A stretch of DNA of 64,000 nt from Macrostomum lignano (lineage: Eukaryota): the NCBI GenBank assembly GCA_002269645.1, contig NIVC01001016.1:186001-250000 (forward strand), in the 5' to 3' direction. Numbering within the stretch: the first letter of the stretch is position 1; every line of letters starts with the position of its first letter. Both the position numbers and the translations under genes were made by a program. The notes beneath the pieces are model-generated. The model made no database searches, was not told where the DNA came from, and worked only from the letters and a program-made list of their open reading frames with translations. Below are positions 430 through 47,620 of this stretch, in pieces.

Positions 430-21068
<20,639 letters not shown>

Positions 21069-30600: not shown

Positions 30601-33600
30601 CTTGTATATAGGCATCCAGCCTTTATAAAGTTATGCAATTTTAAAAACACAAAGGCTAGGAGCTGCTACACATCTCTTACATCACATTTTAAAAGTTGTT
30701 CTGCTAAAAAGATACACTGTGTTCTGAATTATTAGTGGGTCACAGATATTCTTAGCTTGGAACTCCTTGTAAAAGTCAAAACATGCAATAAAATAAAAAT
30801 ATCTCGCAAAATCATTTTGAAAATTTATATAAAAACTTCTAGTGGTGCATTGTTTTTGAAAACACAAACTGTTTTTTGGGCAATTTTTTTGTCACTTAAC
30901 TGGTCTTCAAGATAGCTGTGCCACCTCACTCCGCAGACAGCCACCTTTACTCCCTCGACCCACCCCACTCCACAAACACCCACCTCACTCCCTAGACAGC
31001 CATCTCACTCCGCAGACACCCACCTCACTCCGAAAACACCCACCTCACTCCGCAGACACCCACCTCACTCCGAAAACACCCACCTCACTCCGCAGACACC
31101 CACCTCACTCCAAAGACATCCACCTCACTCCGCAGACACCCACCTCACTCCGAAGACACCCACCTCACTCCGAAGATAACCCACCCCACTCAATTTCTCT
31201 TCCCGCAGCCCCACAAGCCGTTGGCCGCGGCAGCCGCCAGTCCGATTGGCGTCACATTTTTGAAGAGCAACAACAACAGCAGCATCAAATTTGGCCAGTC
31301 TCATTCGTCAAGCTTGCCGACGTCACAGGCCTCCGCGACAAGCGGCGGCGGTGGCATCAGCGGAATTCGAGCCTTCCTGCAGCAGCAGAACGCTTCGGCC
31401 AGCAATTCGCCCGGTGCTCGAATGCTGCGTCGGTCTATTGAAGTGTCAGTCACGACACAGAAGCAGAAAAACCAGTCGCAGCAACAGAGCCAATCTTCTT
31501 CGGTTCCATTTTCCGGCATCAGCCGGGTCGGCATGCCGGATCCTAGCAGCGGCACAAATTTGCCATTCTCAGAATTTGCGGCCGGAATGAATCGAGATTT
31601 TCGGCCAACTCTCGGCCGAGGCTGTGGGGTTGGCGACACGGTCGATTTGAACGACACCTGTCCAAGTAATCAGGCTGGTCCGGTGCTGCCCAAACCGACT
31701 GTAATGTCTGTTGGGGAGATTGCCAAGTTGAAGGCAATTAAGAAGGTAAGCAATGTTTTATTATTATTCAGTTTTCATTCATTTAATACCGGTATTGCTT
31801 TTTAAAGACACCCAGATTACTCCATACACACCCACCTCACTCCATAGACACCCACCTCACGCCATAGACACCCAAATCACTCCATAGACACCCACCTCAC
31901 TCCATAGAAACCCACCTCACTCTATGGACACCCACCTCACTCTATGGACACCAAACTCACTCCATAGACACCCACCTCACTCTATAGATACCCACCTCAC
32001 TCTATGGACACCAAACTCACTCCACAGACACCCACCTCACTCCATAGACACCCACCCCAGTCCATACACACCCACCTCACTCCATAGACACCCACCCCAG
32101 TCCATACACACCCACCTCACTCCATAGACACCCACCTCACTCCAAAGACACCCACCTCACTCCGTAGACACCAACCTCACTCCATTGATACACATCTCAC
32201 TCCATAGACACCCACTTCTCTCCTTAGGCACCCACCTCTCTCCATAGGCACCCACCTCACTTCACAGGCACCCACCTCACTCCATAGACTTCGAAGAAAT
32301 ACATCTATTCATGTTTTTCTCTAAAAGCAAGAGTTTTTTACTTGCTACTCACACTTATCGATAGTTTTCCTATTCACCTTTATTTTTCGTTTTCTCTTTT
32401 AACTCTGTTCTACATCTTATAATCTTATTGCCTATGAAAACAATGATTACAACTTACCTTTTATAGCATAGGCTGCTCGCCTTTATTCATAAATTACACA
32501 CCCAGACGTTTGTTCCCCATTAATTACTGCGACAAAAAACAAGTTTTCATTTTCTCTTTTCTGCATTAGCGACATTCCGACGCCCCAAGAAGCCAAAAGA
32601 GCTGAAAATCTTCAGACTTAATGTCTTGAATTAGGGGTCAAATACTCGTGCTCGCCAATTAGGTGTCAGATACTCCAAAATTAGGTGTCAGATACTCGTC
32701 AATTAGGAGTCAGATACTCTTCAATTAGGTGTCAGATACTCCCTAATTAGGTGTCAGATACTCGGTAATTAGGTGTCAGATACTCCACAATTAGGTGTCA
32801 GATACTCCACAATTAGGTGTCAGATACTCTGCCAATTAGGTGTCAGATACTCGGTAATTAGGTGTCAGATACTCGGTAATTAGGTGTCAGATACTCTGCC
32901 AATTAGGTGTCAGATACTCGGTAATTAGGTGTCAGATACTCGGTAATTAGGTGTCAGATACTCGGTAATTAGGTGTCAGATACTCTTCCAATTAGGTGTC
33001 AGATACTCGGTAATTAGGTGTCAGATACTCGGTAATTAGGTGTCAGATACTCTTCCAATTAGGTGTCAGATACTCTGCCAATTAGGTGTCACGCTCCAAA
33101 TAAGGTGTCAGACGCTCAGATTAAGAAGTCAGACGCTCAGATTAAGATGTAAGACGCTCGGATTAAGATGTCACACGCTCGGATTAAGATGTCAGACGCT
33201 CGGATTAAGATGTCAGACGCTCGGATTAAGATGTCAGACGCTCGGATTAAGATGTCAGACGCTCGGATTAAGATGTCAGACGCTCGGATTAAGATGTCAG
33301 ACGCTCGGATTAAGATGTCAGAGTCCCAATTGAGATATGGGACCATCCTAATTAGTGTCAGAAACGCCCAAAACCGTGCACAATCAGGCTTACAACAGAG
33401 TAGCTCCGTCTCACCCCCCCCCCTTTCTGTCAGATGCGAGCAGCGGGCGGCATGGAGCAGCTCCAACAGCAGCACAGCCAGCGCCGTCTAGCCGAACTCA
33501 ACCAGCGACTCAACGAAGATTCCGTTGGAGACGCCGCCGAGACTCAAGCCTCAACTGTTAGCAAGCCTGCTCGGCAACACCGGCTGTTAGGAAACATCGA

Positions 33601-36600
33601 TACTGAATCGCCGGAATTCCTTCGTCTAATGTCGCAATCGTCTGCCTACGCCGAATTAGCTAGCGATCGCGTCAGCAAAGAGCAGGACAGCTATTTCAAT
33701 ACGCTGGAGCGTAAGGAGCAAGTCGAAGCGAAATTGGCCACCATTACGGAGAGGAAAGTTCGGGTAGCCGACTGCGCCCAGTGCGGAGTGAGGTGTCAGC
33801 AGCCTAGCGAGAGGTGCAAACGAGAGGGACACCAGCTGGATTGGACTACTGCGGTGAAGAGGCCGTTCAAGTGAGACTCATGGTTGCTTGCTTGCTGTTG
33901 GGATTGGGACTCTTTTCATGGGGATCGGGACTCTTCATAGGGATCGGGACTCTCTTCATGGGGATCGGGACTCTTCATAGGGATCGGGACTCTCTTCATG
34001 GGGATCGGGACTCTTCATGGGGATCGGGATCGGGACTCTTCATAGGGATCGGGACTCTTCATGGGGATCGGGATCCGGACTCTTCATGGGGATCGGGATC
34101 GGGACTCTTCATGGGGATCGGGATCGGGACTCTTCATGGGGATCGGGACTCTCTTCATGGGTATCGGGACTCTTCATGGGGATCGGGATCGGGACTCTTC
34201 ATGGGGATCGGGACTCTTCATGGGGATCGGGACTCTTCATGGGTATCGGGACTCTCTTCATGGGTATCGGGACTCTTCATGGGTATCGGGACTCTTCATG
34301 GGTATCGGGACTCTTCATGGGGATCGGGACTCTTCATGGGGATCGGGACTCTTCATGGGGATCGGGACTCTTCATGGGGATCGGGACTCTTCATGGGGAT
34401 GGGGATCGGGACTCTTCATGGGGATCGGGACTCTTCATGGGTATCGGGACTCTTCATGGAGTTCGGGATCGGGACTCTTCATGGGGATCGGGACTCTTCA
34501 TGGGGATCGGGATCGGGACTCTTCATGGGGATCGGGATCGGGACTCTTCATGGGTATCGGGACTCTTCATGGGGATCGGGATCGGGACTCTTCATGGGTA
34601 TCGGGACTCTTCATGGGGATCGGGACTCTTCATGGGGATCGGGACTCTCTTCATGGGGATCAGGACTCTTCATGGGGATCGGGACTCTTCATGGGGATCG
34701 AGACTCTTCATGGGGATCGGGACTCTTCATGGGGATCGGGACTCTTTATGGGTATCGGGACTCTCTTCATGGGGATCGTGACTCTTCATGGGAATCGGGA
34801 CTCTCTTCATGGGGATCGGGACTCTCTTCATGGGGATCGGGACTCTCTTCATGGGGATCGGGACTCTTCATGGGGATCGGGACTCTTCATGGGGATCGGG
34901 ACTCTCTTCATGGAGATCGGGACTCTCTTCATGGGGATCGGGACTCTCTTCATGGGGATCGGGACTCTCTTCATGGGGATCGGGACTCTCTTCATGGGGA
35001 TCGGGACTCTCTTCAAGGGGATCGGGACTCTTCATGGGGATCGGGATCGGGACTCTTCATGGGGATCGGGACTCTTCATGGGGATTGGGACTCTTCATGG
35101 GTATCGGGACTCTTCATGGGGATCGGGATCGGGACTCTTCATGGGGATCGGGATCGGGACTCTTCATGGGTATCGGGACTCTTCATGGGTATCGGGATCG
35201 GGACTCTTCATGGGGATCGGGATCGGGACTCTTCATGGGGATCGGGATCGGGACTCTTCATGGGTATCGGGACTCTTCATGGGGATCGGGACTCTTCATG
35301 GGGATCGGGACTCTCTTCATGGGGATCAGGACTCTTCATGGGGATCGGGACTCTTCATGGGGATCGGGACTCTTCATGGGGATCGGGACTCTCTTCATGG
35401 GGATCAGGACTCTTCATGGGGATCGGGACTCTTCATGGGGATCGAGACTCTTCATGGGGATCGGGACTCTTCATGGGGATCGGGACTCTTCATGGGTATC
35501 GGGACTCTCTTCATGGGTATCGGGACTCTTCATGGGTATCGGGACTCTTCATGGGGATCGGGACTCTCTTCATGGAGATCGGGACTCTCTTCATGGGGAT
35601 CGGGACTCTCTTCATGGGGATCGGGACTCTCTTCATGGGGATCGGGACTCTCTTCATGGGGATCGGGACTCTCTTCATGGGGATCGGGACTCTTCATGGG
35701 GATCGGGATCGGGACTCTTCATGGGGATCGGGACTCTTCATGGGGATTGGGACTCTTCATGGGTATCGGGACTCTTCATGGGTATCGGGACTCTTCATGG
35801 GGATCGGGATCGGGACTCTTCATGGGGATCGGGATCGGGACTCTTCATGGGGATCGGGACTCTTCATGGGTATCGGGACTCTTCATGGGGATCGGGATCG
35901 GGACTCTTCATGGGGATCGGGATCGGGACTCTTCATGGGTATCGGGACTCTTCATGGGGATCGGGACTCTTCATGGGGATCGGGACTCTCTTCATGGGTA
36001 TCGGGACTCTTCATGGGTATCGGGACTCTTCATGGGGATCGGGACTCTTCATGGGGATCGGGATCGGGACTCTTCATGGGGATCGGGATCGGGACTCTTC
36101 ATGGGGATCGGGATCGGGACTCTTCATGGGGATCGGGACTCTTCATGGGGATCGGGACTCTTCATGGGTATCGGGACTCTTCATGGGGATCGGGATCGGG
36201 ACTCTTCATGGGGATCGGGATCGGGACTCTTCATGGGGATCGGGACTCTTCATGGGTATCGGGACTCTTCATGGGGATCGGGATCGGGACTCTTCATGGG
36301 GATCGGGATCGGGACTCTTCATGGGTATCGGGACTCTTCATGGGTATCGGGACTCTTCATGGGGATCGGGACTCTCTTCATGGGGATCAGGACTCTTCAT
36401 GGGGATCGGGACTCTTCATGGGGATCGGGACTCTTCATGGGGATCGGGACTCTCTTCATGGGGATCAGGACTCTTCATGGGGATCGGGACTCTTCATGGG
36501 GATCGAGACTCTTCATGGGGATCGGGACTCTTCATGGGGATCGGGACTCTTCATGGGTATCGGGACTCTCTTCATGGGTATCGGGACTCTTCATGGGTAT

Positions 36601-38598
36601 CGGGACTCTCTTCATGGGTATCGGGACTCTTCATGGGGATCGGGATCGGGACTCTTCATGGGGATCGGGATCGGGACTCTTCATGGGTATCGGGACTCTT
36701 CATGGGGATCGGGACTCTTCATGGGTATCGGGACTCTCTTCATGGGTATCGGGACTCTTCATGGGTATCGGGACTCTCTTCATGGGTATCGGGACTCTTC
36801 ATGGGTATCGGGACTCTTCATGGGTATCGGGACTCTTCATGGGGATCGGGACTCTTCATAAGGATCGGGACTCTTCATGGGTATCGGGACTCTTCATGGG
36901 GATCGGGACTCTTCATGGGGATCGGGACTCTTCATGGGGATCGGGACTCTTCATGGGTATCGGGACTCTTCATGGGGATCGGGATCGGGACTCTTCATGG
37001 GGATCGGGACTCTTCATGGGGATCGGGACTCTTCATGGGGATCGGGACTCTTCATGGGTATCGGGACTCTTCATGGAGTTCGGGATCGGGACTCTTCATG
37101 GGGATCGGGACTCTTCATGGGGATCGGGATCGGGACTCTTCATGGGGATCGGGATCGGGACTCTTCATGGGTATCGGGACTCTTCATGGGGATCGGGATC
37201 GGGACTCTTCATGGGTATCGGGACTCTTCATGGGGATCGGGACTCTTCATGGGGATCGGGACTCTCTTCATGGGATCAGGACTCTTCATGGGGATCGGGA
37301 CTCTTCATGGGGATCGAGACTCTTCATGGGGATCGGGACTCTTCATGGGGATCGGGACTCTTTATGGGTATCGGGACTCTCTTCATGGGGATCGTGACTC
37401 TTCATGGGAATCAGGACTCTCTTCATGGGGATCGGGACTCTCTTCATGGGGATCGGGACTCTCTTCATGGGGATCGGGACTCTTCATGGGGATCGGGACT
37501 CTTCATGGGGATCGGGACTCTCTTCATGGAGATCGGGACTCTCTTCATGGGGATCGGGACTCTCTTCATGGGGATCGGGACTCTCTTCATGGGGATCGGG
37601 ACTCTCTTCATGGGGATCGGGACTCTCTTCATGGGGATCGGGACTCTCTTCATGGGGATCGGGACTCTTCATGGGGATCGGGACTCTTCATGGGTATCGG
37701 GACTCTCTTCATGGGGATCGGGACTCTTCATGGGGATCGGGACTCTTCATGGGTATCGGGATCGGGACTCTTCATGGGGATCGGGATCGGGACTCTTCAT
37801 GGGGATCGCGACTCTCTTCATGGGTATCGGGACTCTTCATGGGTATCGGGACTCTTCATGGGGATCGGGACTCTTCATGGGGATCGGGACTCTTCATAGG
37901 GATGGGGATCGGGACTCTTCATGGGGATCGGGACTCTAGATGTGGGATCGGGACTCTAGATGTGGCATCGGGACTCTAGATGTGGGATCGGGACTCTAGA
38001 TGTGGCATCGGGACTCTAGATGTGGGATCGGGACTCTAGATGTGGCATCGGGACTCTAGAAGTGGCATCGGGACTCTAGATGTGGGATCGGGACTCTAGA
38101 TGTGGCATCGGGACTCTAGATGTGGGATCGGGACTCTAGATGCGGGATCGGGACTCTAGATGTGGCATCGGGACTCTAGATGTGGGATCGCGACTCTAGA
38201 TGTGGCATCGGGACTCTAGATGTGGGATCGGGACTCTAGATGTGGCATCGGGACTCTAGATGTGGGATCGCGACTCTAGATGTGGCATCGGGACTCTCGA
38301 TGTGGCATCGGGACTCTCGATGGGGATTGGCACAAAAAGTTCATATGGTGTCACACTTTTTAAATCGCTATGGTATTTTGTGGATCATGACCTAATTAAA
38401 CTACCTAATTTCACCAGGTGCAAGGACTGCAAGCAGACGACGTTCACCTTGGACTGCCGCTATCCAACCGAGCCGTGCCGCCGCTGCGGCGGGCAGAGCT
38501 ACGAGAAGACCAGCTTCGCTACCGAGCGCAAGGGGCCCACGCTGGAGAGGGACGTGCTGCTGGCTAGGGGCGAGGAGAGAAAGTTCGTGGGTCAGTAG
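24607..38598 (+). CDS. MCM10: DNA replication factor Mcm10, 6 exons, ~848 aa (start codon tentative)
   Basis: Exons 24607-25204, 26053-26604, 27525-27766, 31209-31745, 33434-33870, 38418-38598 sum to 2547 nt = 849 codons with consistent phases. OB-fold motifs (YSIWRLADL, LFLFGKVHEAHWK), CCCH finger (CGRPTK...CQNAVNLAVCPVCEYH) and C-terminal Zn motifs (CAQC...C...H...KRPFKCKDC...CRRC...LLARGEERKF). Confidence 0.92.
25354..25593 (-). mobile_element. tRNA-derived SINE (~240 bp) with 10-bp TSD
   Basis: On -: A box (GCAGCCCAGTGGTCAGAG), B box (GGGTTCGATTCC), 3' stem-loop ACATCTGCC-TATTGG-GGCAGGTGT and a TTATT-type tail. Flanked by CTTCAGTAAA at 25344-25353 and 25594-25603. Confidence 0.82.
25766..25824 (+). 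mobile_element. 5'-truncated retroposon 3' end sharing the SINE tail
   Basis: GTTGCACATCTGGCCCAATTAGGGCAGGTGTAATC followed by (TAT)n; nearly identical to the tail of the SINE at 25354-25593 but in the opposite orientation. Confidence 0.7.
26680..27230. repeat. Minisatellite, 22-bp unit (GATCTCGTAGGTCATTAGTTGG)
   Basis: Degenerates toward both ends. Confidence 0.9.
27900..28053. repeat. Left TIR of the Chapaev-like element
   Basis: Reverse complement of 30767-30920. Confidence 0.95.
28268..30385 (-). CDS. Chapaev-like transposase, 705 aa
   Basis: N-terminal H-x7-C-x2-C...D-x3-P-x3-C-x2-C...C-x-C-x2-C zinc region. Putative catalytic D (KIGIDGGG), D (LAVDMK) and E (WSEQASE), plus CPWC and H-x4-H (KVHAVFEH) motifs typical of CMC/Transib/RAG1-like cores. 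Confidence 0.88.
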   Translation of the reverse strand: MPNPSCGASHAENRLKVCLICMQKGNSMKPIGETVLTRIRRFFMPSCNLDDEQLPAAVCTRCRTLLADIEAGKREEDALPRSFDFSSIKMTVLTRSTTMCECGICTAARWTPIGKGLGSRKVSAHPRGRPSSGIEDPLPEAQPVSTCMRCYSVLGKGISHNCNVTQRRKNLSLQFAMDKRGAEIHASDLIKTKCTSGAFLSTQLATRGPYQLTVTTTAQCKNFCATFVDKPVTAKEFNRFQNTLGLSGQQTKLAAEFLRNWKGRKSVDSGLMSKLRQLDEELGDFFDVKAMQLEVGKDAATEMRHVVYCKDPEGLIDSLLYHRCIEEGNFEVKIGIDGGGNFLKVCLTIVRIGAEQQPKTKTSYSAAACSSRFCDSGVKKLLILAIFEDVRESYFNIKAVLDLLRLQQVRFSLAVDMKMANALLGLQCASSSHPCPWCELNCKEFCSIHHEVPLRSFGSIRQNANSYQELVQQTSSTRHSAARFKNCVRMPLLDFPDETLVINIVPPMELHLMLGIVNRLFKELYSRLQSISNCTIRAQDFANRLNIWQAPYQGGQFTGNHCSKLLNSVDSLEQMLQDCGAIAAMPIVQALRTFREVCRTCFGLVLLDGYDAAIKAFAAAYKDVGIPVSPKVHAVFEHVAPFLRNQPQMPGSALHGLGFWSEQASEAVHADFSRLWDSSYKVAKMSAQYSKQLLKCTIVYNSRHQ
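30767..30920. repeat. Right TIR of the Chapaev-like element
   Basis: Reverse complement of 27900-28053. Confidence 0.95.
30921..31190. repeat. Minisatellite, 22-bp unit (CACCCACCTCACTCCGCAGACA); also at 27850-27899
   Basis: Interrupted by the Chapaev-like element. Confidence 0.9.
31805..32290. repeat. Minisatellite, 22-bp unit (CACCCACCTCACTCCATAGACA)
   Basis: Same family as the array in the preceding intron. Confidence 0.92.
32630..33330. repeat. Compound minisatellite (AATTAGGTGTCAGATACTCGGT, then GTCAGACGCTCGGATTAAGAT)
   Basis: One unit grades into the other near 33110. Confidence 0.92.
33900..38325. repeat. 4.4-kb intronic satellite (TCTTCATGGGGATCGGGAC, 19/21/25-bp variants; terminal 20-mer TCTAGATGTGGCATCGGGAC)
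   Basis: Fills MCM10 intron 33871-38417. Confidence 0.97.
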
Positions 38599-38599
38599 C

Positions 38600-40410
38600 C
38601 TGACCCATCCTCCTACTGACCTTGATGGGGATCCTGACCCATCTTCCTACTGACCTTGATAGGGATCCTGACCCATCCTCCTACTGACCTGGTTGGGGAC
38701 TTGGGGATTCTGACCCATCTTCCTACTGGCTTGAATGGGGATCCTGACCCATCCTCCTACTGACCTGGTTGGGGACTTGGGGATCCTGACCCATCTTCCT
38801 ACTGACCTGGTTGGGGACTTGGGGATCCTGACCCATCCTCCTACTGACCTGGTTGGGGACTTGGGGATTCTGACCCATCTTCCTACTGACTTGAATGGGG
38901 ATCCTGACCCATCCTCCTACTGACCTGGATGGGGATCCTGACCCATCTTCCTACTGACCTTGATAGGGATCCTGACCCATCCTCCTACTGACCTGGTTGG
39001 GGACTTGGGGATCCTGACCCATCCTCCTACTGACCTGGTTGGGGACTTGGGGATTCTGACCCATCCTCCTACTGACCTGGTTGGGGACTTGGGGATTCTG
39101 ACCCATCTTCCTACTGACTTGAATGGGGATCCTGACCCATCCTCCTACTGACCTGGATGGGGATCCTGACCCATCTTCCTACTGACCTTGATAGGGATCC
39201 TGACCCATCCTCTTACTGACCTGGTTGGGGACTTGGGGATCCTGACCCATCTTCCTACTGACCTGGTTGGGGATCCTGACCCATCTTCCTACTGACCTTG
39301 ATAGGGATCCTGACCCATCCTCCTACTGACCTGGTTGGGGACTTGGGGATCCTGACCCATCTTCCTACTGACCTTGATAGGGATCCTGACCCATCCTCCT
39401 ACTGACCTGGTTGGGGACTTGGGGATCCTGACCCATCCTCCTACTGACCTGGATGGGGATCCTGACCCATCTTCCTACTGACCTTGATAGGGATCCTGAC
39501 CCATCCTCTTACTGACCTGGTTGGGGACTTGGGGATCCTGACCCATCTTCCTACTGACCTGGTTGGGGATCCTGACCCATCTTCCTACTGACCTTGATAG
39601 GGATCCTGACCCATCCTCCTACTGACCTGGTTGGGGACTTGGGGATCCTGACCCATCTTCCTACTGACTTGAATGGGGATCCTGACCCATCCTCCTACTG
39701 ACCTGGATGGGGATCCTGACCCATCTTCCTACTGACCTTGATAGGGATCCTGACCCATCCTCTTACTGACCTGGTTGGGGACTTGGGGATCCTGACCCAT
39801 CTTCCTACTGACCTGGTTGGGGATCCTGACCCATCCTCCTACTGACCTGGTTGGGGACTTGGGGATCCTGACACATCTTCCTACTGACCTGGTTGGGGAT
39901 CCTGACCCATCCTCCTACTGACCTGGTTGGGGACTTGGGGATCCTGACCCATCTTCCTACTGACCTGGTTGGGGATCCTGACCCATCCTCCTACTGACCT
40001 GGTTGGGGACTTGGGGATCCTGACACATCTTCCTACTGACCTGGTTGGGGACTTGGGGATCCTGACCCATCTTCCTACTGACCTGGTTGGGGATCCTGAC
40101 CCATCTTCCTACTGACCTGGTTGGGGATCCTGACAAATCTTCCTACTGACCTGGATGGGGATCCTGACCCATCTTCCTACTGACCTGGTTGGGGATCCTG
40201 ACACATCTTCCTACTGACCTGGTTGGGGATCCTGACCCATCTTCCTACTGACCTGGTTGGGGATCCTGACACATCTTCCTACTGACCTGGATGGGGATCC
40301 TGACACATCTTCCTACTGACCTGGTTGGGGATCCTGACACATCTTCCTACTGACCTGCTTGGGGATCCTGACACATCTTCCTACTGACCTGGATGGCGAT
40401 CCTGACACAT
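38600..40410. repeat. Minisatellite, 31/42-bp units (GACCCATCCTCCTACTGACCTGGTTGGGG...)
   Basis: Starts immediately after the MCM10 stop codon. Confidence 0.95.
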
Positions 40411-42975: not shown

Positions 42976-43009
<34 letters not shown>

Positions 43010-43037
43010 AACCTAACTAACTAACAAACAAACAAAC

Positions 43038-43083
<46 letters not shown>

Positions 43084-43084
43084 G

Positions 43085-43144
<60 letters not shown>

Positions 43145-43205
43145 TTAACTGACTAACTAACTAACTAACTAACTAACTAACAAACAACCTAACTAACTAA
43201 CAAAC

Positions 43206-43258
<53 letters not shown>

Positions 43259-43263
43259 GACTG

Positions 43264-43320
<57 letters not shown>

Positions 43321-43325
43321 GTAAC
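42055..43325. repeat. Compound microsatellite (ACTC)n then (ACTA)n
   Basis: Direct inspection. Confidence 0.97.
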
Positions 43326-43724
43326 TAGCTAGCTACCCAACAAAATAACGAACTAACAAAGTTAACTAAGTCTTAGTTAACTAGGACCTAGCAAGGAAAG
43401 CTAAAAAGACAGAGAAAATGTTTCTATCATACACCTAATCTGCTGCAGGTGGTGGGAATTAGTTCAAGACAGAACAATATGTTTGTTATTTTGAATTTCT
43501 GAATATCAGAGCGAGCGCAACTGCATTCGGTGCAGCATGACTGCTCTCGAGTTTCTGTGCGCCAGTGCGGGGTTGTGTTCCCGAAAATTCTGGATTCCTC
43601 ACTGACACTGTATCAGTCTCCTGCATGTGTTCATCTCCGCTTCCATCCATCTGCGTCCATCTCCAGTGCTCCGCTCTGCTGTTATGATATTAACATTTCG
43701 GTTTGTAGAAATTTTTATAGAAAA

Positions 43725-44040
43725 CAGTGAGAGTAGGAAATATAATGCAGTGAGAGTAGAGAATAGAATGCAGTGAGAGTAGAGAATAGAATGCAGTGAG
43801 AGTAGAGAGTAGAATGCAATGAGAGTAAAGAATCGAATGCAATAAGAGTAGAGAATAGAATGCAGTGAGAGTAGAGAGTAGAATGCAATGAGAGTAAAGA
43901 ATCGAATGCAATAAGAGTAGAGAATAGAATGCAGTGAGAGTAGAGAGTAGAATGCAATGAGAGTAAAGAATCGAATGCAATAAGAGTAGAGAATAGAATG
44001 CAGTGAGAGTAGAGAGTAAAATGCAATGAGAGTAGAATGT
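43725..44040. repeat. Minisatellite, 23-bp unit with 69-bp higher-order period (GAGTAGAGAATAGAATGCAGTGA)
   Basis: Direct inspection. Confidence 0.88.
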
Positions 44041-44259
44041 AGTCTTGCTCTGAAATGTGGTTAACCAAGAATTCAATTCCAATCGAACCCTTTGTCTTTA
44101 TTTTTATTTCTCCAAAAAAGGTCAGTAGCCGATAAAACGAAGAAATTGTTTTAATTTGTTCAGAGTTGGCAGCATGTTGAACCATTCCCTACTTAAATGT
44201 AGACGAAGTTGTTGCATTGGTCCTGAAATCATTTTAGTTTGAGTTGATGCCGAACTGAC

Positions 44260-46728
44260 TCAGGCGATGCGGCCTCTGTCAGATGGCAGCAGCCGGCAGC
44301 TCAGTGAGCATCTCAGAATCACGCACTGATACCCTGGACCGTAAGCCATCTGGCAGTCGCGCTGGCTGAAGCATCGTATATCGAATGTCTCGCAGTTGCC
44401 GTTCGAGTAGTACAGAAATCGCTTGTAGGCAGCGCCTGCAGTAGAGGTTTTTAGAGGTGTTTAGATATGTTTAGAGGTGTTTAGAGATGTTTAGAGGTGT
44501 TTAGAGATGTTTAGAGGTGTTTAGAGATGTTTAGAGGTGTTTAGAGATGTTTAGAGGTGTTTAGAGGTGTTTAGAGGTGTTTAGAGGTATTTAGAGATGT
44601 TTAGAGGTGTTTAGAGATGTTTTGAGGTGTTTTGAGATGTTTAGAGGTGTTTAAAGATGTTTAGAGGTGTTTTGAGATGTTTAGAGGTGTTTAGAGATGT
44701 TTAGAGGTGTTTAGAGATGTTTAGAGGTGTTTAGAGGTGTTTAGAGGTGTTTAGAGGTATTTAGAGATGTTTAGAGGTGGTTAGATGTGTTTAGAGGTGT
44801 TTAGTGATGTTTAGAGGTGTTTAGAGATGTTTAGAGGTGGTTAGATGTGTTTAGAGGTGTTTAGAGATGTTTAGAAGTGTTTAGAGATGTTTAGAGGTGT
44901 TTAGAGATGTTTAGAGGTGTTTAGAGATGTTTAGAGGTGTTTAAAGATGTTTAGAGGTGTTTAGAGATGTTTAGAGGTGTTTAGAGATGTTTAGAGGTGT
45001 TTAGAGATGTTAAGAGATGTTTAGAGGTGTTTAGAGATATTTAGAGGTGTTTAGAGGTGTTTAGAGGTGTTTAGAGGTATTTAGAGATGTTTAGAGGTGT
45101 TTAGAGATGTTTAGAGGTGTTTTGAGATGTTTAGAGGTGTTTAGAGATGTTTAGAGGTGTTTAGAGATGTTAAGAGATATTTAGAGGTGTTTAGAGATGT
45201 TTAGAGGTGCTTAGAGGTTTTTAGAGGTGTTTAAGAGGTATTTAGAGATGTTTAGAGGTGTTTAGAGGTATTTAGAGATGTTTAGAGGTGTTTAGAGATG
45301 TTTAGAGGTGTTTAGAGATGTTTAGAGGTGGTTCGATGTGTTTAGAGGTGTTTAGAGATGTTTAGAGGTGTTTAGAGATGTTTAGAGGTGGTTAGATGTG
45401 TTTAGAGGTGTTTAGAAATGTTTAGAAGTGTTTAGAGATGTTTAGAGGTGTTTAGAGATGTTTAGAGGTGGTTAGATGTGTTTAGAGGTGTTTTGAGATG
45501 TTTAGAGGTGTTTGGGGCTTTAAGAACTTTAAATAGCCTGTCAAACTGCCTAGAAGGAGGGGGCCGCAGTAGCTCAGCGGTAAACGCGTCCGACTCTAAA
45601 CGCAAGTGCCCAGGTTCGATTCCGTGCGATAATAGAAATATTTTCAACGTATAACGCAAACGAACTGATAGGATGTCATGTATACGAGAACCTCGTAGAA
45701 GAGTCTGTGCTGTCCGAAAATAGGCCGCCCGCATAAATTTCGGACTCGTGCTCAGGCAAATATTGGATAATCAACTGATAATGACCGAGGTCTGAATAAG
45801 CTCATCGAGTTTCCATAGAAGGCGTTGCTCTGTTTGCAGCCAAATTGTTAGATTTAGAATCCGAAATGTCCCCGCTCCCCGCTTCTAAGTACCGAGTCCC
45901 AGACAGACCTTGTGACGACACGATGCAAGTCACGCAGCAACTGACAGCAGAAAAGGAGGCTTCTTCTTCCTTTGAGTTCCGTCTTAGCCTTCTGGCTGCT
46001 ACATTTTACAGCCTCAACTTTCTCGCCTCGCAGCTGCGTCCTTGCGTTGTCCCTCTTTTGGTCCTCTAATCTTTGTTTGTGAAGCTAGGCTCAGAGAAGT
46101 TCAGAAGAATGAGATCTACAATTTACTCTTAGAAAGTCGTTAAGGTTTTCTTGCCAAAAGGACAATCTGCAGAGCTGTTTGCGTAGTAAAAAACCGTCGA
46201 TATGTAGCGTCAATAACTTTACAAGGCGCACAGATGTAGAGGACTAATAAACCGATATGTAGCGTGTAAATCTTTAAAAACCATGAAAATAAATAGGAAT
46301 CTCAATCTTTACTCGCCGATATGCTGCGTAAGTAGCTTTATAAGTCGGAAAATAAGTTTTGGAACTCGTATTTTCTGTATCCGATATGTAGCGTCAATAC
46401 CTTTACAAGGCGCACAAATGCAAAGATCTACTAAGACGATATGCAGCGCAAAAAAAATTCTAAACCATGCAAACAAATCGGGATCTCTGATGTTTACCTG
46501 CCGATAGATTTACACTAGATTTAAAAGGCGAAAAATACATTTTGGAATTCGGACTTCTTGTAACCGATATGTAGTGAAAATAAATTTATAAGGCGCGACA
46601 AAATATAAGAAACCCAGATCCTCACCAGCTTGCAGGAGTCTCATGCTTTCAGTTTCCCTGTACATCAGCGCTGATTGGGCGATGAAGATTATCAGAAGCT
46701 GGGCGGCTACGCGGCGAGAGATTTTCAT
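44260..46728 (-). CDS. Unrecognised small secreted six-cysteine prepropeptide, 92 aa, 2 coding exons
   Basis: Exon 46728-46626 (ATG...GCT G|gtgagg) joins exon 44435-44260 (ctgcag|GC GCT...TGA); phases match (1/1). Product: MKISRRVAAQLLIIFIAQSALMYRETESMRLLQAGAAYKRFLYYSNGNCETFDIRCFSQRDCQMAYGPGYQCVILRCSLSCRLLPSDRGRIA. AATAAA on - at 44097-44102. Confidence 0.72.
44445..45515. repeat. Minisatellite, 10/20-bp unit (TTAGAGGTGTTTAGAGATGT)
   Basis: Runs up to the acceptor of the peptide gene's last coding exon. Confidence 0.95.
45563..45630 (+). mobile_element. tRNA-like Pol III head (probable SINE 5' end or tRNA pseudogene)
   Basis: A box TAGCTCAGCGG and B box GGTTCGATTCC at tRNA-like spacing, but the acceptor, anticodon and T stems do not pair. 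Confidence 0.55.
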
Positions 46729-46999
46729 GGCTGTTAAATTATGCTGGTGGCGTGATTCGATGCTATTTCAACAGTTGTCGAGCCGCGGCGAATGTGCGAG
46801 CACCCTGGCATGCGAGAATGCGAGCTGAATGTTTTATAAACATATTCTAAAAAGTCCGATTGTGAACCAACAAAATATTGGGGTTCCCTTAATGATAATG
46901 ACGGGAAGGATGCTGCTCAGCGTTTGAGTAACTAATTAGTGATAAAGATGAGAAGCAGGGAATGAGAAACAGGGGATGAGAAATAGCTAGGGATATTCC

Positions 47000-47620
47000 C
47001 AGAGTGACTCCTAGAGTGATTCCCAGAGTGATCTTAAAGCGATTTCTAGAGTGATTCCTGTGATTCCTGTGAATTCCTGTGATGAAGTGCTCCTAGAGTG
47101 ATTCCTAGAGTGATGGCTAGAGTGACCCCTTAAGTGATCCCAGAGTGACTCCTAGAGTGACTCCTAAAGTGATTCCTAGAGTGACTCCTAGAGTGACTCC
47201 TAAAGTGATTCCTAGAGTGACTCCTAGAGTGATTCCTAGAGTGATGGCTAGAGTGATTCTTAGAGTTATCTGTAGAGTGACTCTTAGAGTGACCCCTTAA
47301 GTGATCCCAGAGTGACTCCTAGAGTGACTCCTAAAGTGATTCCTAGAGTGACTCCTAGAGTGATTCCTAGAGTGACTCCTAGAGTGATTCCTAGAGTGAT
47401 GGCTAGAGTGATTCTTAGAGTTATTTGTAGAGTGACTCCTAGAGTGACCCCTTAAGTGATCCCAGAGTGACTCCTAGAGTGACCCCTTAAGTTATTTCTA
47501 GAGTGACTCCTCGTAGAGTGATTCCAGAGTGAATCCTAGAGTGATTCGTAGAGTGACTTCTAGAGTGACTCCTATAGTGACTCCCAGAGTGATTTCTATA
47601 GTGAATTCTAGTGACTCCTA
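47000..47620. repeat. Minisatellite, 11-bp unit (CTAGAGTGACT/TTC)
   Basis: Direct inspection. Confidence 0.9.

Follow-up and report, generated by a model that had tools for sequence, protein, structure and literature searches.

Invertebrate genomes commonly encode secreted peptides that are rich in cysteine and restricted to a lineage, and the family from the flatworm Macrostomum lignano described here will therefore not surprise a specialist. Its member BOX15_Mlig004136g1 is located on the minus strand of a 64,000-nucleotide stretch of contig NIVC01001016.1 (positions 186,001 to 250,000 of the forward strand; assembly GCA_002269645.1, Mlig_3_7), which is referred to below as the window. Several described groups of peptides invite comparison with its product. 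Defensins and scorpion K+-channel toxins of the cysteine-stabilised alpha/beta (CS-alpha/beta) type are of similar size, have three disulfides, and carry a helix that packs against a beta-hairpin; in insects and scorpions, many of them are synthesised as precursors from which a pro-piece is removed. Knottins hold six cysteines within about 30–35 residues, as does the Mlig004136 peptide, and the C-x6-C-x5-C opening occurs in squash-type knottins. In the precursors of crustacean hyperglycaemic hormone (CHH) and ion transport peptide (ITP), a signal peptide, a precursor-related peptide, and a KR site precede a six-cysteine hormone.

The CHH/ITP type shares the layout of the Mlig004136 family, namely a single dibasic site directly before a conserved six-cysteine peptide. 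It differs in cysteine spacing, in length (about 72 aa for CHH), in its all-helical fold, and in the absence of sequence similarity, and the analogy concerns layout only. The CS-alpha/beta signature, CxxxC in the helix and CxC in the last strand, is absent from the Mlig004136 family, in which the cysteines are spaced 6-5-9/10-4-3; the last two are thus separated by three residues, as opposed to CxC. The second half of the Mlig004136g1 spacing (x9-x4-x3) is unlike that of squash inhibitors or of CC-containing toxin frames.

On balance, the sequence leads us to read BOX15_Mlig004136g1 as a transcribed gene for a convertase-processed secreted peptide of an unnamed family, which would most likely be a signalling ligand and not a fast-evolving toxin; we hold this with somewhat better than even confidence. 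The family is a new one within a familiar class, the small secreted disulfide-rich propeptides. Its novelty is modest and consists in a coherent family of four gene groups whose processing site is sharply delimited and which has a cysteine frame of its own, a conserved intron, and a predicted fold matching no solved structure, whereas the gene model itself had already been deposited.

The BOX15_Mlig004136g1 gene and its predicted product

The spliced coding sequence (CDS) of BOX15_Mlig004136g1 is 279 nt in length and encodes a 92-aa prepropeptide, exactly as read in a preliminary description of the window made from its sequence. The product is 100% identical over 92 residues to GenBank entry PAA73360.1 (UniProt A0A267FHU1), a 'hypothetical protein'. 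The annotated span of the gene on NIVC01001016.1, 2469 bp, maps exactly to positions 46728–44260, the start of the exon 1 coding part being the start of the GenBank gene, and the deposited contig agrees letter for letter with the window over 4 kb surrounding the gene. The preliminary description thus had the two exons, the splice sites, the product, and the cysteine spacing right. It had also called the gene hidden, unrecognised, and undescribed, which does not apply to the gene model, since the identical GenBank annotation was derived from RNA-seq transcripts. PAA73360.1 has been present in GenBank since the Mlig_3_7 annotation of 2017, with no family, domain, or function assigned. The impression of a hidden gene can be traced to the mechanical list of open reading frames (ORFs), which, as had been observed, misses it: no ORF is listed for exon 2, and exon 1 appears there only as a 72-aa read-through.

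The Mlig_3_7 gene models were obtained by mapping RNA-seq reads with STAR and assembling them with StringTie and TACO; these assemblies were merged with a de novo transcriptome and cut at trans-splice and poly(A) sites known from experiment, and ORFs were called by TransDecoder (PMC5730564). BOX15_Mlig004136g1 is a genuine, transcribed two-exon gene, and its junction rests on this published transcript-derived annotation. The junction 46626–44435, which the preliminary description expected to find in transcripts, is supported in this indirect way. Exact-sequence look-ups of the family returned NCBI genome contigs only and no transcript-type contigs.

The intron of Mlig004136g1 has the donor GTGAGG and the acceptor CTGCAG, and about half of its 2190 nt is occupied by a 20-bp satellite that ends 6 nt from the 3' splice site; a satellite in the 2.2-kb intron had been described earlier. 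The AATAAA placed about 155 nt downstream of the gene is present as well, in the form of two overlapping signals. The coordinates of these and other features are listed in Table 1.

The N-terminus of the product has the properties of a signal peptide: an n-region (MKISRR) with a charge of +3, a hydrophobic core (VAAQLLIIFI) with a mean Kyte–Doolittle value of 2.8, and a putative cleavage site, AQS|AL, that fits the –3/–1 rule. The signal-like segment recognised in the preliminary description is therefore plausible on these grounds. The cysteine spacing of the mature part is C-x6-C-x5-C-x9-C-x4-C-x3-C, and a tblastn search found the six-cysteine domain as a single copy in the 64-kb window. From the sequence and the models described below, we infer signal-peptide cleavage, cleavage at KR, disulfide formation, secretion, and a signalling role. 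The signal peptide (approximately residues 1–19, cut near AQS|AL) would direct the precursor into the endoplasmic reticulum, where its C-terminal 52 residues may fold oxidatively into a compact three-disulfide core of a strand, a helix, and a hairpin. A subtilisin-like proprotein convertase would cut after Lys39-Arg40 and free a mature peptide starting with FLYYSNGNC. This 52-aa peptide, with Phe41 as its first residue, would be secreted and would act on a conserved partner, most likely as a hormone- or neuropeptide-like signalling ligand.

A family of four gene groups and its predicted fold

When 1.84 billion representative proteins were searched exhaustively with phmmer, seven matched at E ≤ 0.001. 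Two belong to the gene's own cluster (the g2 copy and an old chimeric model), one is a repeat protein of the duck, and the other four come from M. lignano and represent three additional gene groups, Mlig025436, Mlig006190, and Mlig017203. The matches to the three groups have E-values of 9e-8, 1e-6, and 2e-5. All three groups are annotated as 'hypothetical protein'. Mlig025436 is represented by a 92-aa protein and, for the same peptide, by an older model of 149 aa; Mlig006190 is represented by a protein of 117 aa and Mlig017203 by a partial model. The duck protein, XP_071890466.1, was rejected as a relative: its E-value of 3e-8 results from a three-cysteine segment repeated five times, and it has neither the KRF sequence nor cysteines 4–6.

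An alignment of eight sequences from the four gene groups contains 13 invariant columns: K39, R40, F41, S45, G47, C49, C56, F57, D61, C62, C72, C77, and C81. All members share an N-terminal hydrophobic segment and, after KR, the motif F[LM][YF]xS[NG]GxC-x6-CF-x3-DC-x9/10-C-x4-C-x3-C, and in every one of them exactly eight residues separate KR from the first cysteine. Compared with Mlig004136g1, the three paralogue groups show an overall identity of 30–36% (43–45% in the core), a pro-region of 28–56 aa as opposed to 21, and a third loop of ten residues instead of nine. With this one difference in loop 3, homologues keeping the cysteine spacing, which had been named as a check on the gene, do exist.

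KR forms the boundary between a poorly conserved prepro part and a conserved mature part. Between the groups, identity is 7–26% in the prepro part, 43–61% from KR to the sixth cysteine, and 0–14% in the tail. The pro-region (21–56 residues) cannot be aligned between groups, and the tails (6–11 residues) are unrelated. The KR processing site proposed earlier is invariant in all paralogues and would be the site of cleavage; a furin-type arginine at P4 is found only in Mlig025436. The proposal that a GR near the C-terminus signals amidation has fared worse, GR being confined to the Mlig004136 copies, while the other tails end in VPVPRQ, HHVNNGL, and MRPYMKSTK.

All six annotated CDSs could be rebuilt exactly from genomic DNA. 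In all four groups, there are two coding exons, and a phase-1 intron splits a Gly codon shortly after the signal peptide. The length of this intron ranges from 201 to 2201 nt across the family and from 201 to 902 nt in the three paralogue groups, where no satellite was noted. The groups are located on four different contigs and do not form one tandem array. On NIVC01000540.1, the exon for the mature peptide of Mlig017203 occurs once more, in inverted orientation, approximately 3 kb downstream of the annotated gene (minus strand, 10396–10521 of the retrieved stretch L006), where no gene is listed.

Two near-identical copies of the gene, g2 (PAA69942.1) and g3 (PAA60013.1), are 96–97% identical to Mlig004136g1, and any pair of the three copies differs by 1–4 non-synonymous and 2–3 synonymous substitutions. 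Their divergence cannot show coding constraint, because the promoter and untranslated regions (UTRs) are as conserved as the CDS and the repeat-rich flanks misalign; the old paralogues were therefore used instead. In Nei–Gojobori comparisons of the core between groups, the non-synonymous rate (dN) is 0.29–0.61 and the synonymous rate (dS), which is saturated, is 1.1–2.0, with dN/dS of 0.17–0.56. Saturated dS combined with dN/dS below 1 indicates that these duplicates are old and that purifying selection has maintained them as coding sequence. The comparison of paralogues provides the strongest evidence that the peptide is made and matters. The net charge of the mature peptide varies from –1 (Mlig025436) to +5 across groups, with +2 in Mlig004136g1; cationicity is thus not a conserved property.

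A word-indexed homology search, made with the single protein and with a profile of the mature domain, recovered nothing beyond the cluster of the gene itself and one paralogue, and is too insensitive for peptides of 50 aa. A scan of metagenome contigs with back-translated motifs gave 122 pattern matches, none of which was confirmed by tblastn. In the data searched, the family appears to occur only in M. lignano; macrostomorphs other than this species are nearly absent from public protein sets.

The mature part could not be placed in a named family in the preliminary description, and the comparisons made here with Pfam, with PDB sequences and a family profile, and with PDB structures by Foldseek likewise gave no significant match. 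A Pfam-A scan at E ≤ 10 found no family for the Mlig004136g1 protein, nor for four of five further sequences; the fifth, Mlig006190, matches the defensin-like Nodulin_late family below threshold (19.7 bits, where the cut-off is 30.4). In the PDB sequence set, nothing was found for the Mlig004136g1 protein, and the family profile returned only noise (E of about 1) and no Kunitz chain.

AlphaFold2 was run twice on six-sequence alignments of the mature domain, once with the Mlig004136g1 peptide and once with Mlig025436 as the first sequence. Both models show a short strand, then a helix of eight residues and a beta-hairpin, with a mean predicted local distance difference test (pLDDT) score of 73 and 76 and values of 85–90 in the core. 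The predicted helix spans alignment residues 26–33 and would contain a single cysteine. In topology, the models resemble CS-alpha/beta peptides minus the defining cysteine pairs. A Foldseek search of PDB gave no significant match (best E of 2.1 and 1.6, probability ≤ 0.30), and members of the CS-alpha/beta group appeared only at E = 2.9–7.2, with a probability ≤ 0.12 and a template modelling (TM) score of 0.25–0.51. A cystine-dense peptide from a designed library was also among the recurrent weak neighbours.

The knottin-type relationship suggested in the preliminary description was not borne out. Knottins, with a I–IV, II–V, III–VI disulfide knot on a small beta-sheet, are essentially built of beta strands and loops, whereas both models contain the eight-residue helix within a strand–helix–hairpin arrangement, and neither a Pfam knottin family nor a significant fold match was found.

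Names assigned automatically in UniProt conflict for one and the same Mlig025436 peptide: A0A267DLA0 is called 'ShKT domain-containing' and two older models 'BPTI/Kunitz inhibitor domain-containing'. An ShKT domain was rejected, as it has no Pfam match at E ≤ 10 in A0A267DLA0 or Mlig004136g1, the terminal spacing is x4, x3, and a beta-hairpin is predicted in place of a mini-fold made of helices alone; the terminal spacing of ShK is C-x3-C-x2-C. BPTI/Kunitz was rejected because the older Mlig025436 models have no Pfam match to it at E ≤ 10 and no Kunitz chain appeared in the PDB profile search. As the names disagree and Pfam supports neither, they should not be propagated.

Possible roles: signalling ligand or defence peptide

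Given that the gene is real, we lean slightly towards an extracellular signalling ligand and away from a defence peptide, with rather less than even confidence, because the mature part is conserved while its net charge is not, and because the groups are old and lie on separate contigs. Action on a conserved partner is suggested by the conservation of the mature part, including the flexible N-terminal octapeptide outside the disulfide core, while the signal peptide, pro-region, and tail have drifted. It is also conceivable, though we would put it only tentatively, that the family represents disulfide-rich hormones or neuropeptides of macrostomids, or of early-branching flatworms more widely, with an undescribed three-disulfide fold, four distinct ligands, and FLYxSNG as the receptor-activating end.

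Several points weigh against our reading of the gene. Reads mapping to more than one of the three copies may have contributed to the junction support, and the signal peptide of Mlig004136g1 was judged by simple rules of charge, hydropathy, and the –3/–1 positions. The supplements to four papers on expression in M. lignano (PMC5816591, PMC7336406, PMC5730564, PMC5977470), searched for the identifiers Mlig004136, Mlig025436, Mlig006190, and Mlig017203, contained none of them. Full-text searches for Mlig004136 and Mlig025436 gave no paper, and no tissue, peptide-mass, or activity data for the Mlig004136 family were found; literature searches on neuropeptides of Macrostomum, on secreted proteins rich in cysteine, and on toxins of flatworms turned up nothing on the family. 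Three of the four groups are cationic, two of them with acidic pro-regions, and defensin-type antimicrobial peptides also pair a conserved mature part with a variable pro-piece. In addition, the weak Foldseek neighbours that recur are half-SLPI, scorpion K+-channel toxins, and a rice defensin.

The strongest alternative, which we rate as nearly as likely as the signalling ligand though well below even odds, is a host-defence effector: a lineage-specific defensin-like antimicrobial peptide, or a toxin-like secretion against prey or predators. It would be synthesised in inactive form, lose its pro-piece by cleavage at KR, and act directly on microbial or target-cell membranes or channels. The predicted strand–helix–hairpin topology with three disulfides has the general shape of CS-alpha/beta peptides, and the toxins, defensin, and half-SLPI named above recur as neighbours, although none of these matches is significant. 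The mature charge is +2 to +5 in three groups, the pro-regions of Mlig006190 (–2) and Mlig017203 (–5) are acidic, and the sub-threshold match of Mlig006190 is to a defensin-like family. Flatworms are reported to be without the classical lophotrochozoan families of antimicrobial peptides (AMPs), and cysteine-rich candidates dominate the predicted AMP-like peptides of helminths (PMC10414684). However, the canonical CxxxC/CxC signature is absent, Mlig025436 is anionic, and the Mlig004136g1 peptide is no more than weakly cationic. Moreover, the loops and the N-terminus before the first cysteine are conserved and the signal and pro-regions are not, which is the opposite of the usual toxin-gene pattern; conotoxin and spider-toxin precursors show the reverse of what is seen here. 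The core dN/dS is below 1, and the groups are dispersed, with no single tandem array.

A small secreted canonical protease inhibitor with a Kunitz-, WAP-, or squash-knottin-like function, directed against digestive, reproductive, or microbial proteases, appears improbable. The opening of the cysteine frame does recall squash-type inhibitors, half-SLPI (a WAP domain bound to proteases) is the best or a top-five Foldseek neighbour in both searches, and some older Mlig025436 models bear the Kunitz name. Nevertheless, the Foldseek matches have a probability ≤ 0.30 and E ≥ 1.6, the Pfam models Kunitz_BPTI, WAP, and squash do not match any family member at E ≤ 10, and the automatic names contradict each other, ShKT against Kunitz, for the same peptide. 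The spacing is unlike the Kunitz or WAP cysteine frames, and a peptide released at KR with a conserved free N-terminus would be atypical of such inhibitors.

Finally, a functionless or decaying young ORF that is transcribed, or an artefact of transcript assembly across repeats, is very improbable and is largely refuted by the paralogue comparison: the gene is embedded in satellites, and the promoter and UTR blocks of the three near-identical copies are about as conserved as the CDS, but four groups with saturated synonymous divergence still keep the frame, KR, the six cysteines, the N-terminal motif, and the intron phase, with no stop codon or frameshift in the copies examined.

Transgenesis, RNA interference, and in situ methods exist for M. 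lignano, and the Mlig004136 family is easy to test owing to the small gene and its compact conserved promoter block of about 250 nt with a TATA box. Functional tests could yield a new flatworm peptide-signalling system or the first defensin-like effector class in flatworms; the interest of the family would rise if expression or peptidomics revealed a new signalling system.

Sequence around the gene

Table 1. Coordinates of BOX15_Mlig004136g1 and surrounding features in the 64,000-nucleotide window.
Feature	Position	Strand	Remarks
Exon 1, coding part	46626..46728	-	103 nt; Met1 to first base of Gly35 codon
Signal peptide segment, predicted	46728-46672	-	aa 1-19, within exon 1; start of pro-region also in exon 1
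Intron	44436..46625	-	2190 nt, GT..AG, phase 1, splits Gly35 codon
Exon 2, coding part	44260..44435	-	176 nt; remaining pro-region, KR, mature peptide, stop
Stop codon TGA	44262-44260	-	End of exon 2
Lys39-Arg40 codons, predicted proprotein-convertase cleavage site	44419..44424	-	Invariant in 8-sequence family alignment
Predicted mature peptide, 52 aa, Phe41-Ala92	44263..44418	-	C-terminal to KR
Six Cys codons	44394-44392, 44373-44371, 44355-44353, 44325-44323, 44310-44308, 44298-44296	-	Mature peptide
TATAAA box, putative core promoter	46833..46838	-	110 nt upstream of ATG; promoter role inferred
Two overlapping AATAAA poly(A) signals	44097..44108	-	152 and 158 nt past stop codon
20-bp satellite TAGAGATGTTTAGAGGTGTT (+ strand unit)	44442..45513	.	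54 copies, Tandem Repeats Finder
(ACTA)n tandem array	43000-43369
23/69-bp satellite	43717-44036		Begins just beyond poly(A) signals
12/155-bp satellite	46997-47620		Ends ~160 nt upstream of TATA box
UAA/TPT/EamA-type transporter, 347 aa	~57650-52570	-	Inferred by synteny with g2, g3 loci
Mcm10, 838-841 aa, convergent	below ~40200	+	Inferred by synteny with g2, g3 loci

The g2 and g3 copies lie on syntenic duplicated segments; in the sequenced DV1 line, the large chromosome is present in additional copies, and redundancy of the assembly is known. Both copies retain the frame, all six cysteines, the donor GTGAGGAT, the acceptor CTGCAG, and the intron satellite. The intron of g2 is 2201 nt long and that of g3 1540 nt. 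In the annotation, both loci are preceded by a UAA/TPT-type transporter and followed by Mcm10 on the other strand, and the window is syntenic with them. The transporter-side region of the window includes a large tandem array at approximately 53.1–54.5 kb.

The approximately 250 nt upstream of the ATG, which include the TATAAA, are 98–99% identical across the three copies, and the 3' flank of similar length (about 250 nt) with the poly(A) signals is 98% identical overall. The first AATAAA is retained in all three copies and the second is altered in g3. The more distant flanks are repeat-rich and about 10% divergent, the upstream part being rich in satellites. The unique parts of Mlig004136g1 are small islands among four tandem arrays.

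A tRNA-like stretch was found inside the intron at 45562–45640, on the plus strand and thus antisense to Mlig004136g1. Motifs resembling an A box and a B box (TAGCTCAGCGGTAAA ... GGTTCGATTCC) can be made out in it, and its acceptor stem is broken. There is one such stretch in the window, and all three gene copies have it at 97–98% identity. Neither ARAGORN nor Rfam at E ≤ 1 called it. Probably, it is the head of a tRNA-derived short interspersed element or a tRNA pseudogene.

On the minus strand, an AG is present 2 nt before the start codon (46729–46735, ttaacag|CC ATG). Many M. lignano mRNAs are trans-spliced to a spliced leader, so this AG could be a trans-splice site. An older chimeric model of 177 aa, UniProt A0A1I8FFU4, which is automatically named 'DUF4149 domain-containing', joins exons of the upstream transporter (at approximately 54.9–54.7 kb and 52.8 kb of the window) to the Mlig004136g1 ORF; as the window has no matching continuous frame upstream, the model appears to take the AG before the ATG as an acceptor. 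A second model, A0A1I8FHC4 (230 aa), is a chimeric prediction from an earlier assembly, in which residues 1–71 of Mlig004136, from a g3-type copy, are fused to frames 13 kb away on the Mcm10 side (31228–31709 of the window).

Long G+C-rich (0.56) arrays of short-period tandem repeats occupy approximately 33900–40400 of the window, in the flank syntenic with the Mcm10 side. In BLAST comparisons with the g2 and g3 loci, they show up as ladders of offset matches.

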